Assembly: GCA_964036045.1 (NCBI GenBank)
Contig: OZ038378.1
Coordinates: 185,070,001 to 185,134,000, forward strand
Direction: 5' to 3'
DNA from: Eutreptiella sp. 'Long Island Sound 2002'
Lineage: Eukaryota > Protista > Euglenida
Length of the DNA: 64,000 nt
Shown: piece by piece, positions 1-13,887 of the stretch
How positions within the stretch are numbered: the first letter of the stretch is position 1
How the letters are laid out: every line of letters starts with the position of its first letter
Notes under the pieces: model-generated
The model's database searches: none
The model's input: only the letters and a program-made list of their open reading frames with translations
What the model was told of the DNA's origin: nothing
Translations under genes and position numbers: made by a program

Positions 1-20
1 GTGCCCCCTGTGTGCCTCAG

Positions 21-369
21 GGTGTGATTCTGCTGGATGGCATAGACCTGCGTGAGTACAACGTGTCGTGGCTGCGGGAGCATATGGGGGAAGTGGCACA
101 GCAGCCCTGCCTCTTCGAGCTGTCTGTGGAGGACAACATCCGCCTCGGGAAGCGAGGGGCGACACGCAGTGACGTGGTGGAGGCGGCGCGCCTAGCAAAC
201 GCCTTCGATTTCATCCTGAAGCTGCCGGAGGGCTTCAACACAAAGCTGGGGGACTGTGAACGCACGCAGTTGAGTGGCGGACAGATGCAACGCATCGCCA
301 TTGCCCGGGCTTTTGTCGCGCAACCCCGGATCCTCCTCCTCGACGAATACTCTTCGGCTTTGGATGCAG
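21..369 (+). CDS. ABCB/MDR-type ABC transporter, nucleotide-binding domain exon (gene starts upstream of window)
   Basis: Translation [24 protein letters not shown]-loop..[14 protein letters not shown] (signature) ILLLDE (Walker B) SALDA (D-loop). Acceptor ctcag at 16-20, donor G|gtgcaa at 369/370. Confidence 0.92.
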
Positions 370-435
370 GTGCAACTCCACTCCCCATGCTGAGCTGCGG
401 TCGCAAAGCTCCGGCCTGAAGTATTTCCGGACAGT

Positions 436-513
436 GGGCCTGCGCATAGCGAGTTTGGGGCTGTGCACAGGGAGTGGGGCTGTGCATAGGGAGTGGGGCT
501 GTGCATAGGGAGT
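436..513. repeat. 19-bp minisatellite (GGGGCTGTGCATAGGGAGT) in ABC intron
   Basis: Three near-identical copies at 457-513 plus a diverged copy at ~436-454. Confidence 0.85.
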
Positions 514-1466
514 GGCGCCAGTGGGGCTGTGTGTATGCAGGGGCATGTGATAGTGCATGGGACTGGCCAGCAGGAGGGAGTCTGTGCATCGTTGGGGAGA
601 TGTGCGGACATTTCATGTGATAAGCTGTTGCCATTGGGCCTCCCGATTCCCTTGACCCATCCTCCATGAAAAGTCCACTCCATGCAGACCAGCACCTTCT
701 AACCCCCTGCGCAAAGCTCCATGGCCGGTGCCCAGCCCTCCCCATGTCTGTGCAGGGGCAGAAAAGGTGCCAAAGTCTAGCTGGTGGCGCTGAGCCTACC
801 TGTGCACAGTCTGGAAGCTGAGTGCTCTAAAGATGGTGTTCTAGTGTTTGGGAGGTGTTTCTGGGTGTTCTGAGGTGTGTCAAAGTGAAAATCTGGCATT
901 TCAGATTTCTGATCATTTTTGATTATCTAGAGGGAACACCTGGACAATCTTCAGACACCAGCCAACCATTAATTGCCTTTTCGGCTTTCGAAGTCACTGA
1001 GGACGCCCGTGCGTGCGAGGATCTCAGCGGCAGAACGTCGCCGCTTTGATCCGACGTGCGTACACTCCATGTGGACCGCAGCAACACCGCTCATCATTAA
1101 GGGGGTCTCCGTAGCAGGGGCCTCCATAGTGTTGGCCTCCGTAGTGGTGGAGGAGTTTGAGGCCTTGGGCTTTAAAAAAAATTGTCCAAAGGACCGCATT
1201 TCACTGGCCGTTTGGGAGCGGTTGTGGTGGGGCACCGGGGCATGGGGGCAACTCGGGACGTTCCAAAATGTGCAGATGCAGCGCAAGGTTGGAAAGGGTT
1301 TCTATTCCACACCTGTTGATGGGCAGTAACTACACAAGGACCATGCAGAAGTTTGCCTACACATTGTGTTCTAGTGCCATGTTTGTGAGAATTGTGCTTG
1401 GTGTGGTGAACAGGCAGGTTTTCTATGTGTAGTGTCTTTTTGTGTCGCGCGTTGCGCGCAAGCACG

Positions 1467-1541
1467 GGCTTGTCTAAGCATGAAGACCCTGGTGACCGTT
1501 GTTTTTCTGACCTTGGCCTTGCTTGGACAAGGGGGGAGGGA
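1467..1541 (+). mobile_element. Copy of hairpin + G-run terminal repeat family
   Basis: cttgtctaagca...tgcttggacaag inverted arms followed by ggggggaggg; homologous copies at ~10890, ~11957, ~19970(-) and ~45580(-). Confidence 0.6.
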
Positions 1542-1661
1542 GTAAGACGGGGTAGCGTTATTGCCTCTGCTCCACTTGGGGCTCGACCTCCGTATTTGTG
1601 GTCCGGCGTCATGTTCCATGGCAGCTGAGCCACGCAACCTCCGCTCGCCACGTTGGTACAG

Positions 1662-1931
1662 GGGCAGAGAAGGATGTTCAGAGCTCGCTGGACCAGTTGC
1701 GGAAGGCGGGGTGCACGTCGCTGGTCATTGCCCACCGCCTGACCACTGTCCAAAGTGCAGACCTGATCATTGTCATGGTGGAGGGCGAGTGCGTGGAGAG
1801 GGGCACACATGCCCAACTCATGGCCAAGAACAACATCTATGCCTCACTCGTCTGCCAGATCGACCTCTCCGACGGAAGAGAGAGTGACGACTCAGCGCAG
1901 TTGGACCAATCGATGGGGAGAGACAGTGAAG
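1662..1931 (+). CDS. ABCB transporter NBD, next exon (H-switch and acidic/Ser linker); 3' boundary uncertain (1931, 1949 or stop at 1963)
   Basis: Acceptor tacag at 1657-1661 joins in phase 1 to give ALDA-G-AEKDVQSSLDQL..VIAHRLTTVQSADLIIVM..GTHAQLM..IYASLV, the canonical P-glycoprotein NBD end. Confidence 0.88.
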
Positions 1932-2299
1932 GTTCTGCCTGCAGCTCCTGTAGGATGGGGTAGGCTTAAGGACAGCATCCAGCCACATCCCACCAACCAC
2001 CTCTCCTCTGGTGCCACGGCATGATCTACCACTGCGTTCTCGCGCTTTTGATCACGACTCCAGCTGGCTGCAAGGTCACGCAGTTACATCTGTGAGCAGT
2101 GCCCGTCTTTACCGACAAGGCGTTCTCTTGTTTGTTAGGGAGACTTTGGATGTGTGGTTTGTTGACTGATGGGGGTTAATGCTGAATTGACCATGAGCGA
2201 TTAACCATCACCAAACGTCAGTCAATCACCAATTCTGGGCGGGTGACCATCAACTGCCTGGGTTTGACTGCCCGTTTGGTGATGGTTAGCTGCAGCTGC

Positions 2300-2780
2300 G
2301 CATGTCTTTGACCCATTTTTTTGGCCCATTTTTTGGTCACAAATGGCCCATTTTCAAGGGCCAAATGGTTCAAAGGCCCATTCTTTGAGTTGCCCCCAGG
2401 GCATGGTAGTACCATCTCGCTGCAGAGACAGGTGACAGGAAAACAGAGTCCAAATATACGTCCCACCGCTACAGAGTCCAAATATGCGTCCCGCCGCTGC
2501 GGGCGGCGTGCGAGCTGTGTCTCACAAGGGACAAAATATGTTGTACTTTGGCTGTCAGCTTGACCCGGTCCGTCTGACCGAGCACTCACGAGGCACACAA
2601 GTCTGAGCACAAAAAAATAGGCCCATTTTCAAGGGTTTGTAGGACTTGCAACAGGTGAAGAAGGGTCAAAAGTAGCTCAAAATGGGCTCATTTCACTTGT
2701 TTGTGCAGCCCAAATGGCCGAGGACCATTTTTGGAAGAAAACATTTTTGACCCATTTGTCACCCATTTTTGGTCCCATAC
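2300..2780. repeat. Fragments of a dispersed repeat (gacccatttt..ggcccattttcaagg..gcagcccaaatgg)
   Basis: Shared motifs at 2309-2365 and 2617-2778, and a short match near 33200. Confidence 0.5.
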
Positions 2781-3090
2781 TATTTCTGCTAGGATTGTGT
2801 TAGCAGTGATGTCATGGCCTATTTCTGGCCCTTGTAAGCCCTTGGTGGGGCTAGATACTCCAGAACTGAACTGAACTGCCGCCTGTGCTGTCCATCAACA
2901 ATGAGTTTCTTTTTATTTATATCATTATTTGGCATACTGTGGTGGAAATGCAGTATTAGGAATGCAAAGATCTCTTTTGGTGGTAATTGGCCCTGGTTTA
3001 GGTCTTTTTTAGTATTTCTGTTAGGATCGTGTGAGCAGTGATGTCATTCCCTGTTTTTGGTTTTTGTGAGCCCTTGGTGGGGCTGGATCC
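2780..3090. repeat. ~80-bp diverged direct repeat pair
   Basis: tatttctg(c/t)taggat..agcagtgatgtcat..gcccttggtggggct at ~2780-2860 and ~3013-3090. Confidence 0.7.
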
Positions 3091-3470
3091 CCTTCTTAAA
3101 TATATTTTGTCGAGTTTTCTGCCTCCAAAAAGGGCTGTGGGTCCCTATTTACCTCCCAAAGCCCATGCGATGACCATAACATTTCTTTGGAAAACTGAAA
3201 GTTATGCTGAAAATTTCTTATTGAGACGTAATTGTACCTGTACAGTCGTCCTGTCCGTCCTCCTCCTTCCTCCACGTAACTTCTCTTATTCACTGCTTTC
3301 GCAGTGCTTTTAAGTAACATTCATGGTCAATAGCACTGGCTCCACCCCCCAAAAGGGTCCTGATACGATGGCTTGCCGCTGCACCAACGCCCCACGCAAC
3401 TTCTTATGCACCAAAACCCCAGTCCCTCCCTCTTCTCTTCAAAACCCAAGTCCCTCCCTCTTCTCTTCAG

Positions 3471-3778
3471 GTAGTGGCAGGGCAACGGTGACCCGCGCCA
3501 AAGGCAAGTCCCTGAAGCTTGTGGATGTCACCCCACGTCTGCATCGCCCGCGGTGCGGGAGCCGTGGCGGCGGCACGGTCGGCCGTTGTAATACCCCCAG
3601 CATGACCAGCCACGGCACGTTCCCAAGGTCGGACTCCACTTCGTGTCCGCTGCACATGCCGCTCCTGGGCCACGAGGTGGTGCAGCACTCTTGGGAATGC
3701 GTGCAGCAGTACGGGGAGGATAAGTGGCTGCATGAGATGAGGGATAATTTTGCAGATCAGGGAGGGAGTTGCACGGAG
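3471..3778 (+). CDS. Exon encoding low-complexity linker plus globin A/B helices
   Basis: Strong pyrimidine tract and ttcag acceptor at 3466-3470; GC3-rich open frame ending LLGHEVVQHSWECVQQYGEDKWLHEMRDNFADQGGSCTE; phase-0 donor GAG|gtatgc at 3778/3779. Confidence 0.75.
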
Positions 3779-5249
3779 GTATGCTCCCTGTCTCTTCGCC
3801 CATCTGCCTTGTGTGTGTGTGTGTGTGTGTGTGTCCAGAACTGCATTTGCTCATTCTCTACCAACAGACCGAAAGACGTCTAGGACAGCTCTGCTGTTCC
3901 TGAGGAGTTTTCTTTCAACCGCTTTTCTTGCTTTGTTCTTGTCTCGCGGTTCTCAACGTGTGTGTGTGTGCCGGGTTGCCATTCTCTTTCGTATCATTCG
4001 TGAGTATTTCCCCCCACGATGCCATTGCCCTATTGCCCACCCCCTCCCCCGCCCCCTCCCCCGGTTGTTAGGGGTAGCTGAGCAGAATGCCCACCTCTCG
4101 CAGTTTTTGAACCCGCCCTCTTCACCCCCAACCCAATGGGCGGACAACCAACCCGCCTATCCACGAGTGGAGGGTTCCCTCCTCAAAAAGGAGACACATA
4201 CGTCCACGTGGAAGTGCCAACCGGCATACTCCAGCCTTTGTGGCACACCCCCCCACCGCCCCCTCGGACAGGCCTGAAGAAGAATATTCTTTTGGCATGC
4301 CCCCCCCCCCCCCCCCCGAAACCTCGCTGCCCATCACCGAATTGGGACGCCAATTGCAGCTCAACGTTTTCACCACCCAGGGATCTCATGGAGGAGGATT
4401 TGGTCACATGGGCGGACAAAAACAGTAGCCATGGGAAGCACGGACACTAGCACTGGACCCTGGTTGAATGGATGGGCAGTACACATAGCCCACGGGCAGA
4501 GGTTTGGCCGAGTGAGTGCGAGCATAAGCAAGGACTATACGCATTTGGATATGTGAAGTAGCGGCATGACGGCCATCTTTGTGGCTGCTCAAACACAGTG
4601 CCAGCAGATATGTCACCAGAATGAGCAACAATTAGGACGATGACATAAAGAGTAGGTCCCAACTGGAGCAAACACTTCATCGGGACCGAGCACCTACAGT
4701 TTGGCAACGCTATGAGCCCTGCTGTTGCCGCGCTCGATTTGTTGAATGTAATCTGCGGCCCATCACCAAAATTATTTGAGAGGCAAAGAATGAAATTTGC
4801 TGGAGGACAAATTTGGGTCATTTTTGGTCCACAGACTTTTGGGTCTCCAGACCCCCGCCCCCCCCACACCCCCAACACCCCCTTGAAGTACAGGCCTGGC
4901 CCTCGAACAGCCTGCCCTTTCTGTCCCTCGTGTCAGCATCCTGTCTGTGCAGAATAGGCTGTGGAGAATGCGACTTGCAGAATAAAAAAAATGGGTCGTG
5001 TAGATTATCTCTTGTTGGAGTTTTGTTCAATTTTTTATATCTTTTTGAACTCACACAAGGATAAGGTCAACCTAGTACGGGTTCAACAAAGCAGCTGCTT
5101 GGGTTGTGGATGGAGGTCAACCACTTCTCATTCCCAGACTCACTCATTCCCAAGGCTTCCCAAGGGAGGGCTAGAGCAAAGCTGTTTTCAATTCAAAATT
5201 CGAAATTCAAAATTCAAGGAAATTCACAAAATATCTATAAGGTTGTGTG

Positions 5250-5390
5250 ATTGGATTGAATTAGAGTGCAGGTGTATTGGTTGGATTCAATTGGGGTAGA
5301 TTGGACTGAGTTGGATTGAGCTGATTTGGAATGGAATGGAATTGACTGTAGGATTTGATGACAAAATATTCAACTGAGTGAAATTGAATA
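5250..5390. repeat. Degenerate pentamer (TTGGA/TTGAA-like) microsatellite
   Basis: Periodic ttgga/ttgaa/atgga runs visible. Confidence 0.6.
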
Positions 5391-5587
5391 CAAATGTGCT
5401 TATCAGCGACGTAAGCGGTGAGTATTGCACACCTTGTGATGCATTCATCCACCCATTGATCCCCACAACTCTGCATGTTCCACCTCCAGACAAACCCCTA
5501 CAAATGCATACAAACCCCATGCGAAGCATGGGAAGGACCCGTGTCTTGTCACCCACTGCATGACCAATGTCTCCACTACTCTCCCAG

Positions 5588-5959
5588 GATCAGTGCCACG
5601 CGCTGCGTGACATGGTGCTGCGGATGCTGCGGGAGGGGGTGGAGACGGACCGTCGCGTGCACCACGAGGCGCTGCATTTTGTGGAAACCGACTTCGGGCG
5701 GCTGCTGACCGCATGGCTGTACATGGTCCGGAAGGTCATGGGGGGGAAGTACAACATTCGCGAGGTGCTGGCGTGGAGCTCAGTACTGGAATGCATCCGC
5801 ATGCTCATCGTCGCCTCGGGCCCCCGCAGTGCAGACGACTCTAGTGAGCAGCTGGAGCTTTCACAATCTTTCTCGGAGGCCAACATCCGCAACTTGAGCA
5901 TGTGCTCACTCCCGTCGGAGCACATACCCTCCCTGCCGTCCCCCGACCATTCACTATAG
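5588..5959 (+). CDS. Terminal exon encoding globin E-H helices
   Basis: Phase-0 acceptor cccag at 5583-5587. DQCHALRDMVLRML..RVHHEALHFVETDFGRLLTAWLYMVRKVMGGKYNIREVLAWSSVLECI aligns without gaps to the globin F8-His/G4-Phe/G-H pattern (H-x9-F...LG..F..E...AW). Stop TAG at 5957-5959. Confidence 0.8.
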   Translation, partial: DQCHALRDMVLRMLREGVETDRRVHHEALHFVETDFGRLLTAWLYMVRKVMGGKYNIREVLAWSSVLECIRMLIVASGPRSADDSSEQLELSQSFSEANIRNLSMCSLPSEHIPSLPSPDHSL

Positions 5960-6734
5960 TCACAAGCTGCTGGAAGGCCCAGAGCGGGGTTTCAGGGAAT
6001 GGTCACGAATGTGGTTGAAGAGGGTCGGTGGAACGGTTGCTGTCGGCTAAACGTCCCGTCAGTGGGGGCCGTTAGAGAAACGGAGAGAGCGGGTGGGTCA
6101 CGGGAGAGGGGTTTGCCCCCCCCCCCCCCGCCAATGCATCCTACGTCGCGGAGGATGGGCGGGCCCGGTCCTTGTATGGGAGTCCTTCCCTGCTCTTCTG
6201 CCTTGTGGGCCGGGAGACAATCGGCAACGGCAGGCGGATAACCGCCAATGGCCCAGTTTGTGTCCATTAAGCACCGGCCGCGGGTGAAGTTTCATACGGT
6301 TTCTCCTTCCCAGTGACACACGTCAAATTTAGAGTGTCGCTTCACATTTAATGATAGAACGTCTGCCGTGTGTAGCGCCTGGCCGCATTCTGCAATGGCG
6401 GTGTGGGCATGTGTTGGGCCAGGCGTACATACAAGTCTTTTGTTGGGGTGGTTTGTTTTTGCATGAAGGACAGCCCTGTCACCCCCGTGGGCCACCCCCC
6501 GTGGGGAGGGGGGACAGGGAGGCTCCCCCTGCCGAGTGTGAGCCCTCCCCCTCCCCCTGCCCCTCCAGCATGCTGACGTGGGGCGCGGTGGGGTCAACAC
6601 TTCGCTCTGATCCCACGACGGCGCTTTCCCTCCCCCGCCCCCGACAGACACACATGACCGCGATCAACACAAGCAGGTCGCACAAAAGATATGGCGCTGG
6701 ACACCGCTCGTACTACACAGTACCCAGCCTACTG

Positions 6735-12100: not shown

Positions 12101-12754
12101 CCCCCCTTCATTGCCGGGGAGCTAATCTTCTCATAGTGTGTACTGAACACGTGTTTACGAGCGGTGTGAGTAAATCTGTGTTTAAGACATGTCGCCTACT
12201 GAGACTGAGTTTTTGTTGGCTTCTGGCAACCCCAGGAACCATTCCTCACCCACCCACCCACCCCCACATCACATCTATTAACATCAGTCTTTTCAATTGT
12301 GCCATCTTGCTAGAGATGGCACAAGCAAGACACTGACGGCTCGCTCTTGCCTGTCCGGACCCATTATGCATGCATTTTGTCTGAGCTTGCCTTAAACTAT
12401 ACAAAGCTGTGCACTGATTTCATTGGGTTCACAAGGAGGAGCCCCCCCTTCCCCTCAGAACCCCTTACCCCTTCCCTCCCCCCGCTCAAAGACGAGTGGC
12501 AGGGGAGGGCCAGAAGGGCAGACAAGGTAGCCGGTCTAGCCCCATTACAGCATTGTGCTTTGCATGTGCTTTGAGTGGAAGCCGTTTTCATTGGTTCTGA
12601 TGTGATTGGGCGCCATGGCCAACGTTGCTGTACCCAACATGCACCCCCTCCATGTCCGCAAGCACAGCTTTGTCCAAGCACGGTGGCCCCATGTTGCGGT
12701 GGCTTTCAGGGACCTGAGCCGTGCCTGCACACTGGGTGGGATCAGGCAACCAGC

Positions 12755-12769
12755 CTTTTGACTTTACAG
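12755..12769 (+). promoter_or_regulatory. Putative splice (possibly spliced-leader trans-splice) acceptor 8 nt before the cysK ATG
   Basis: ccttttgactttacAG ending at 12769, ATG at 12778. The trans-splicing interpretation is inference from the probable euglenid context. Confidence 0.45.
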
Positions 12770-12777
12770 GGTCGCCA

Positions 12778-13887
12778 ATGATGATAGTTCTGCCCAACCC
12801 CCGCCTTGCAAGGAGGCTGGCGCACCAAGTGCGGCGCGTTGCCAGCCGGACCGCGGGAGTGGAATCAAATGCGAAGGAGTTGCTGGCGGCCAAAGTGTAC
12901 GAGGACAACTCTCTGGCCATCGGCAAGACGCCCCTGGTGCAGCTGAACCGGGTGACCTTCGGGTGCCAAGCCAAGAAGGTTCTGGCCAAGGTCGAGGGCC
13001 GCAACCCGGCGTACTCCGTGAAGTGCCGCATCGGGGCAGCAATGATCTGGGACGCAGAAGCGCGAGGCGACCTCCGGCCCGGCATGGCGATCGTGGAGCC
13101 GACTTCCGGAAACACGGGGATCGCGCTGGCCTTTGTCGCGGCGGCGCGCGGGTACGACTGCATCCTGACCATCCCCGAGAGCATGAGCGTGGAGCGGCGC
13201 AAGGTGATGAAGGCGTACGGGGCCAAGATCGTGCTCACTGAAGCCGCCTTGGGGATGAAGGGCGCCATCGGCGCTGCCGAGGAGTTGGTCCGGAGGGACC
13301 CCAACCGGTATTACATGCCGCAGCAGTTCAACAACCTCGCGAACCCCTGGATCCATGAGCTGACCACCGGCCCCGAGATCTGGGACGCGACGGACGGCGA
13401 CGTGGACGTGCTGGTGTCAGGCGTTGGGACCGGCGGCACGATTACGGGTGTGTCCAGGTTTTGGAAGCATCAGAAAGGCAAGCCCCTGCACAGTGTTGCC
13501 GTGGAGCCCATCCACTCCCCGATCCTCACTCAGTACCGCAATGGGGAGCCTCTCACGCCCAGCCCCCACAAAATCCAAGGCATCGGGGCGGGCTTTGTGC
13601 CTCGGGTTCTGGATATGGAGATGGTTGACGAGATCGAAACAGTCGATCAAGAGGCTGCCATCGTGATGGCCCGAAGGCTCGCCCAAGAGGAGGGCATGTT
13701 GGTGGGCATCAGCTGTGGTGCTGCTGCTCATGTGGCCGTGGCGCTAGCCCGCCAGGATCGCTTCAGGGATAAGACCATTTGCGTCGTCTTGCCGGATGCT
13801 GGGGAGCGGTACCTCACCACAACCCTTTTTGACAACGAGGTCTACAAGAACTTGGAATCCTCCAAGGCAGGCTCCGGACTTTTGTAA
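12778..13887 (+). CDS. cysK: Cysteine synthase A (O-acetylserine sulfhydrylase), intronless, 369 aa with Arg-rich N-terminal extension
   Basis: [27 protein letters not shown] (PLP lysine), [37 protein letters not shown]: colinear with E. coli-type CysK. Confidence 0.97.

Follow-up and report, generated by a model that had tools for sequence, protein, structure and literature searches.

A probable C-terminal extension spliced in frame to an ABCB-type transporter of Eutreptiella sp.

Does an ATP-binding cassette (ABC) exporter end where its reading frame first meets a stop codon, or does it continue into exons located further downstream, and what would these exons then encode? This question is raised by a locus of the euglenid Eutreptiella sp. 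'Long Island Sound 2002', located at the beginning of a 64,000-nucleotide (nt) stretch of genomic DNA (assembly GCA_964036045.1, contig OZ038378.1, positions 185,070,001 to 185,134,000, forward strand), which as a whole is referred to here as the window and whose own numbering is used throughout. The window carries the 3' end of one ABCB-type (P-glycoprotein/MDR-like) ABC exporter gene on the + strand. A first-pass annotation, made from the sequence alone, had proposed that this gene is fused to a globin. Of this proposal, the in-frame splicing of the ABC gene to extra exons was borne out by RNA, and the globin identity was not. Taken as a whole, the reading that we favour, with a probability of about 0.62, is that of an ABCB exporter whose frame stays open past the TAG at 1963, being cis-spliced in frame to 3471-3778 and 5588-5959, with a cytosolic extension of 225 residues.

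Splicing of the transporter gene and rival gene models

The C-terminal two thirds of the ABC nucleotide-binding domain (NBD) are encoded at 21-369 and 1662-1963, and the Q-loop region, the LSGGQ signature, Walker B (ILLLDE), the D-loop (SALD) and the H-loop (IAHRL) can be read in the translation. The domain is recognised by the Pfam model ABC_tran (2.2e-14), and its closest solved relatives among PDB chains are ABCB1/P-glycoprotein, plant ABCB1/19, ABCB4 and ABCB11 (about 1e-65), the ABCB1-type chains matching 115 NBD residues at E = 1e-65, with both NBDs of the chain matched. The gene starts upstream of window position 1, its Walker A motif and membrane domains being located outside the window, and RNA contigs from two of the runs described below (X2 and X3) continue upstream. 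Since the NCBIfam exporter profiles (MsbA, HlyB, TAP) stop at about residue 64 of the second ABC piece, the NBD is taken to be complete at ...NNIYASLVCQ. Past this point, the ABC frame enters an acidic, Ser-rich (Ser/Asp) stretch of 25 residues with an isoelectric point (pI) of 4.1, which agrees with the Ser/Asp-rich linker noticed in the first place.

The evidence for the continuation of the gene comes from four RNA-type runs (X1-X4, X1 being a metatranscriptome run), whose assembled contigs were placed on positions 1-6000 of the window. Each run holds 12-19% of the words of this stretch, approximately its exon share. Such contigs prove presence, not absence, as rare variants and short tips are dropped (a 26-nt spliced leader is such a tip), and word depth, which is stated once for each contig, gives no ratio of fused to other forms.

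The fused contig is record 1 of X1 (804 nt, word depth 5.7, 0 mismatches), which lies on 203-366, 1659-1929, 3469-3776 and, with its last 61 nt, from 5586 onward; with the offsets of this placement taken into account, it joins 203-369, 1662-1931, 3471-3778 and 5588-5646 across three GT..AG introns. Its own positions are contiguous at every joint (743/744 at 3778/5588), with no sequence between the exons. The joint 1931/3471, which skips 1539 nt in GT..AG fashion with a side of 255 nt and no mismatches, is exactly the junction that had been predicted. Because de Bruijn assembly cannot make an exact GT..AG junction with only 4 shared letters, the spliced molecule exists. This contig is the sole X1 contig on 3471-3778, and the bin depths equal what single contigs give. 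The junction 369/1662 was found in all four runs, and 1931/3471 and 3778/5588 in X1 only; the last exon, 5588-5959, is covered by contigs in all four runs.

The splice sites themselves are consistent with this structure. GT donors are present at 1932-1933 and 1950-1951, both of phase 1, and an AG acceptor at 3469-3470; the phases assigned earlier to both donors and to this acceptor were correct, and only the donor after 1931 is seen in use, the second one (1949/1950) not being seen used in the contigs of the four runs. With the GT at 3779 and the AG at 5586-5587 as splice sites, the exon ending at 3778 continues in phase 0 at 5588, a splice that had also been anticipated and that is confirmed both by the frame and by the X1 contig.

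The joined coding sequence within the window comprises 1299 nt, a multiple of 3, and runs without internal stop to the TAG at 5957-5959, so that the product consists, within the window, of 207 ABC residues and then the 225-residue extension. Across 3471-3778 a single frame, that starting at 3473 (phase 1 from 3471), is open and continues the ABC frame, the other two containing 4 and 5 stops. The first Met of the extension is its residue 44 (ATG 3602), which would be an internal Met in the fused product, and the 43 codons located before it show a G+C content at third codon positions (GC3) of 0.72, next to 0.74-0.76 in the ABC exons and 0.80 in the last exon. The intron windows (n=97) have a mean GC3 of 0.57 and a maximum of 0.72, the latter being the same as that of the pre-ATG stretch. 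The region 3471-3778 behaves as an internal exon, and not as a 5' untranslated region (UTR); this had been suggested on account of its GC3-rich codons before any ATG, and the region shares one RNA contig and one open frame with the ABC NBD exons before it and with the 5588 exon after it.

In euglenids, a spliced leader is added to mRNAs at AG acceptors of the ordinary kind. In a rival model, the locus has two genes, the ABC gene ending at TAG 1963 and a 182-residue protein being translated from ATG 3602 after spliced-leader trans-splicing at AG 3469-3470. Under this model, the fused contig would represent a minor by-product that arose when a read-through precursor was spliced from a cryptic donor to the trans-splice acceptor of the downstream gene. 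This proposal fits the habits of euglenids, the strong duplicated pyrimidine tract that precedes 3470, the availability of ATG 3602 and the finding of the junction 1931/3471 in one run only, and the leader, a tip below the word length of the assembler, would be lost from the contigs. However, the cis junction preserves the reading frame, and no stop interrupts the 43 pre-ATG codons, whose GC3 is coding-like, a combination for which chance is roughly estimated at about 1 in 15. Furthermore, an ABC mRNA that stops at TAG 1963 would have its 3' UTR on 1934-2200, but X1-X4 have no contig there, and among the contigs of the four runs neither a separate 5' end nor a listed loose end is found at 3471. 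The contigs of the ABC exons and of the last exon are also similar in word depth in each run (about 4-8), a soft argument, taking into account that it is one figure per contig. Two separate genes are, in our opinion, quite unlikely.

The same lack of contigs with sequence from 1934 onward, in any run, bears on another model, in which alternative last exons are used and both products are substantial: a short ABC form, with intron 2 retained, TAG 1963 as stop and polyadenylation nearby, and a long form, the extension being a regulated add-on. Alternative 3' ends usually have the layout seen here, with a donor inside a coding exon and an in-frame stop 30 nt further on, and an X2 contig (record 8) ends at 1932, within a base of the point of divergence, a weak indication with a depth of 5.3. 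Substantial use of both ends is considered unlikely.

Several points weigh against the single cis-spliced gene that we favour. Its junction 1931/3471 comes from one assembled contig of one metatranscriptome run, the exon 3471-3778 is without coverage in X2-X4, and the contigs would not show a spliced-leader form of this exon or a short form polyadenylated after TAG 1963. In addition, both structural models of the extension made with AlphaFold2 (AF2) are of low confidence (predicted local distance difference test, pLDDT, of 63 and 39), no orthologue was found, and the function proposed for the extension is drawn by analogy only.

The extension and the globin question

Three parts can be distinguished in the extension of the fused product: an Arg/Gly/Ser/Thr linker of 57 residues, strongly basic (pI 11.8, with 11 K+R, 16 S+T, 12 G+P and several R/KxxS/T sites); a stretch of 123 residues with 8 His, 5 Cys and 4 Trp; and 45 acidic, Ser-rich C-terminal residues. 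In the last exon, this 45-residue tail comes after about 76 residues of predicted helices, in which His, Cys and Trp are frequent. AF2 was run on single sequences of the separate exon peptides. For the peptide of exon 3471-3778 (from 3473), pLDDT is below 50 at residues 1-77, helices are predicted at 74-80 and 82-95, with which the helical region starts, and the mean pLDDT is 39; for 5588-5842, which encodes the initial 85 residues of the last exon, helices are predicted at 2-16, 22-51 and 57-76, with a pLDDT of 63 and a predicted template modelling score (pTM) of 0.39. The folded part of the extension is thereby modelled as a helical region of about 105-120 residues, located after a predicted disordered linker.

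The extension matches no family model and has no detectable relatives, which makes it an orphan at the sequence level. In Pfam and NCBIfam searches with all four exon peptides, the ABC domain was the only one found, with no family for the extension, and an exhaustive HMMER search of 1.84 billion representative proteins with the extension gave 0 matches. A word search with the last exon and with the open reading frame (ORF) 3323-3880 gave nothing, the JGI metagenomes scanned with the last exon yielded no contig encoding it, and the rest of the window has no paralogues of the extension. When compared with all PDB chains by phmmer, 5588-5956 gave nothing at E <= 10, and 3602-3778 gave chance matches only (E 0.4-0.6), to restriction enzymes and a steroid isomerase.

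The last exon, 5588-5959, had been regarded as a globin exon, and the whole protein as a gas- or haem-regulated exporter. Certain features seen by eye recall the E7, F8, G and H elements of 3/3 globins, including an A-helix-like VVQHSWECV, an H..R..V stretch, and HHEALHFVETDF followed by LL..LYMV.K.MGG and VLAWS. In addition, globin clusters ranked first in an ESM-feature (language-model) search with the 123-residue peptide of the last exon, with a score of 0.77, a level that is often reached by shuffled sequences. When the tail was trimmed from this peptide, unnamed clusters took the first places along with ARM/TPR/HEAT-like repeats (0.86-0.90), and the matches listed included no globin; the same search with the peptide of exon 3471-3778 gave nothing. 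This lead was set aside, as the globins vanish once the disordered tail is trimmed.

The other tests also argue against a globin. Neither of the two extension exon peptides has a match at E <= 10 to the Pfam models Globin (PF00042), truncated globin/Bac_globin (PF01152) or Protoglobin (PF11563), and no globin match was found in NCBIfam or, at E <= 10, in the PDB. Against a globin profile, with filters off, the joined 123-residue region scores -1.3 bits, which is equalled or bettered by 358 of the 1641 scored shuffles (2000 made), and hhalign gives it a probability of 0.2%; both are weak tests, the profile being narrow, as it was made from 45 relatives of the flavohaemoglobin-type Hmp of E. coli (64-100% identity to Hmp). 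In the partial model of 5588-5842, which is of low confidence, a single 30-residue helix occupies the place expected for the F-G corner; Foldseek searches of this model against the PDB gave a best E of 5 and no globin, and a wide VIA-align comparison led to generic helical bundles (best Z 6.6), with no globin in the top 50. Finally, a 3/3 globin would need 20-40 residues more than this region offers. In a comparison by eye with typical members, the putative distal His comes about 20 residues too soon after the A-like motif, and the putative proximal His about 8 too soon after the distal one. The 8 His of the region include candidates for a haem-ligating proximal His (F8).

Thus, the globin assignment was not confirmed by any profile, PDB, fold or relative match, and regulation by gas or haem is not supported, as the globin tests were negative or unstable. 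That the helical region is a divergent, shortened haem-binding globin, by which the pump is gas- or haem-regulated, is very unlikely. It is likewise improbable, when the idea is widened, that the His/Cys-rich region represents a strongly diverged and shortened globin-like domain, or another haem- or metal-binding sensor, on the last NBD of an ABCB exporter; if this were true, it would be the first ABC exporter with an ATPase directly gated by haem, O2/NO or redox state.

Introns, repeats and neighbouring sequence

The features of the locus, together with the evidence on which each of them is based, are collected in Table 1.

Table 1. Exons, introns and untranslated region at the 3' end of the ABCB-type gene (window coordinates)
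Feature	Position	Strand	Evidence
ABC exon, Q-loop region to D-loop	21..369	+	Pfam ABC_tran; X1-X3 RNA contigs; AG at 19-20 before the exon
Intron 1, GT..AG	370..1661	+	Joint 369/1662 in one contig per run, 4/4 runs
ABC exon, H-loop, NBD end and 25-residue acidic Ser/Asp tail	1662..1931	+	NCBIfam profile ends; X1-X4 contigs; joint 1931/3471 in X1
ABC frame if intron 2 is kept, 10 more codons, TAG 1961-1963	1932..1963	+	Translation; second donor 1950-1951 inside
Intron 2, GT..AG, 1539 nt, many dispersed repeats	1932..3470	+	X1 joint; repeat listing
Internal coding exon	3471..3778	+	Contiguous with ABC exon in X1 record 1; single open frame; GC3 0.72-0.76
Intron 3, GT..AG, 1809 nt, phase 0	3779..5587	+	Joint 3778/5588 in X1 record 1
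Last coding exon, TAG 5957-5959	5588..5959	+	Contigs in all four runs
3' UTR, minimum extent	5960..6109	+	X1 record 6 passes position 6000 by 109 nt; X2-X4 contigs by 46-99 nt

Introns 1-3 are dense with dispersed repeats, on which RNA contigs of 90-95% identity pile up, with a depth of up to 435 at 3801-4000; these contigs come from other copies of the repeats. Intron 1 contains, at 433-544, five tandem copies of a G-rich 19-21-nt unit (AGTGGGGCTGTGCATAGGGAG-like), whose starts lie 19-28 nt apart, and dispersed repeats at about 1274-1536. In intron 2, a 28-nt tandem pair is present at 2443-2498 and repeat families at 2428-2600 and 2712-2863 / 3010-3088, a 79-nt unit at 2778-2856 recurring at 3010-3088 with 84% identity. 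The RNA contigs on the repeats of this intron (depth 34-140) have A-rich loose ends behind 2598 and a joint going back 161 nt. At the end of the same intron, at 3412-3467, a 28-nt pyrimidine-rich unit is tandemly duplicated with 96% identity directly before the acceptor, an AG being found only after the second copy.

Intron 3 starts with a (TG)n run and contains poly-C runs. At about 3850-3960 it carries a short dispersed repeat on which the depth of the RNA contigs reaches 140-435 in all four runs, in comparison with about 5 for the exons; many of these contigs have 90-95% identity and differing flanks, and one poly(A) loose end lies behind 3918. This repeat has the appearance of a multi-copy element that is transcribed, or of a common module of 3' ends. 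A motif of the form TGGCCCATTTT..GG is found at 2309-2365, 4814-4835 and 6249-6270, both in the introns and in the downstream spacer, and is probably part of a dispersed element.

Further downstream, an uninterrupted ORF of 388 codons (12721-13884, + strand) encodes a full-length PALP domain (pyridoxal-phosphate-dependent enzyme; 2.2e-70), and appears to be a single-exon gene amid an intron-rich region. Rfam and tRNA scans of the whole window were empty.

Possible role and wider meaning

As it follows the NBD, the extension would be cytosolic. It can be envisaged that a flexible and possibly phosphorylated linker, changing from acidic to basic and bearing R/KxxS/T sites, tethers the module to the NBD, and that the small helical module and its acidic end act as a lineage-specific regulatory or docking module, which might affect ATPase activity or the dimerisation of the NBDs, or connect the pump with a partner. 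To judge from their residues, the His/Cys-rich helices may also have a putative role in metal, haem or redox sensing.

To our knowledge, no more than a few tens of residues follow the NBD in known ABCB proteins, whereas this protein would run on for 225 residues by means of two extra exons. C-terminal regulatory domains of ABC ATPases (those of MalK, MetN and ModC, and the CBS domains of OpuAA), as well as the disordered R region of CFTR, gate ATPase activity. The present case is like them in having an extra cytosolic module beside the NBD, and its Ser/Thr/Arg-rich linker resembles a phospho-regulated region in composition; however, the likeness is compositional, with no relation in sequence or fold, and most of those systems are bacterial importers. 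From the Q-loop region to the H-loop, the NBD is of the same type as those of ABCB1/P-glycoprotein and plant ABCB1/ABCB19 (PDB 6qex, 8zpx, 8woi). With globin-coupled sensors and chimeric globins (PMC1457004), the common idea is that of a sensor fused to an effector, along with a few short motifs that are alike by eye. In those sensors, profiles recognise the globin, which in most cases occupies the N-terminus (PMC1457004), whereas the present domain is too short and has no profile, structure or relative in favour of a globin. Neither a published ABC-globin fusion nor such an extension on eukaryotic ABCB pumps was found in the literature searched.

The locus also has consequences for annotation, since the stop located 30 nt past the used donor would make gene finders truncate the ABC gene and call a spurious orphan gene of 182 residues. 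Without the globin identity, the case becomes one of lineage-specific domain accretion. If the fused form is the main product, Eutreptiella would possess an ABCB exporter with a sizeable extra cytosolic module attached to its ATPase, which may represent a new way to regulate or anchor these pumps.

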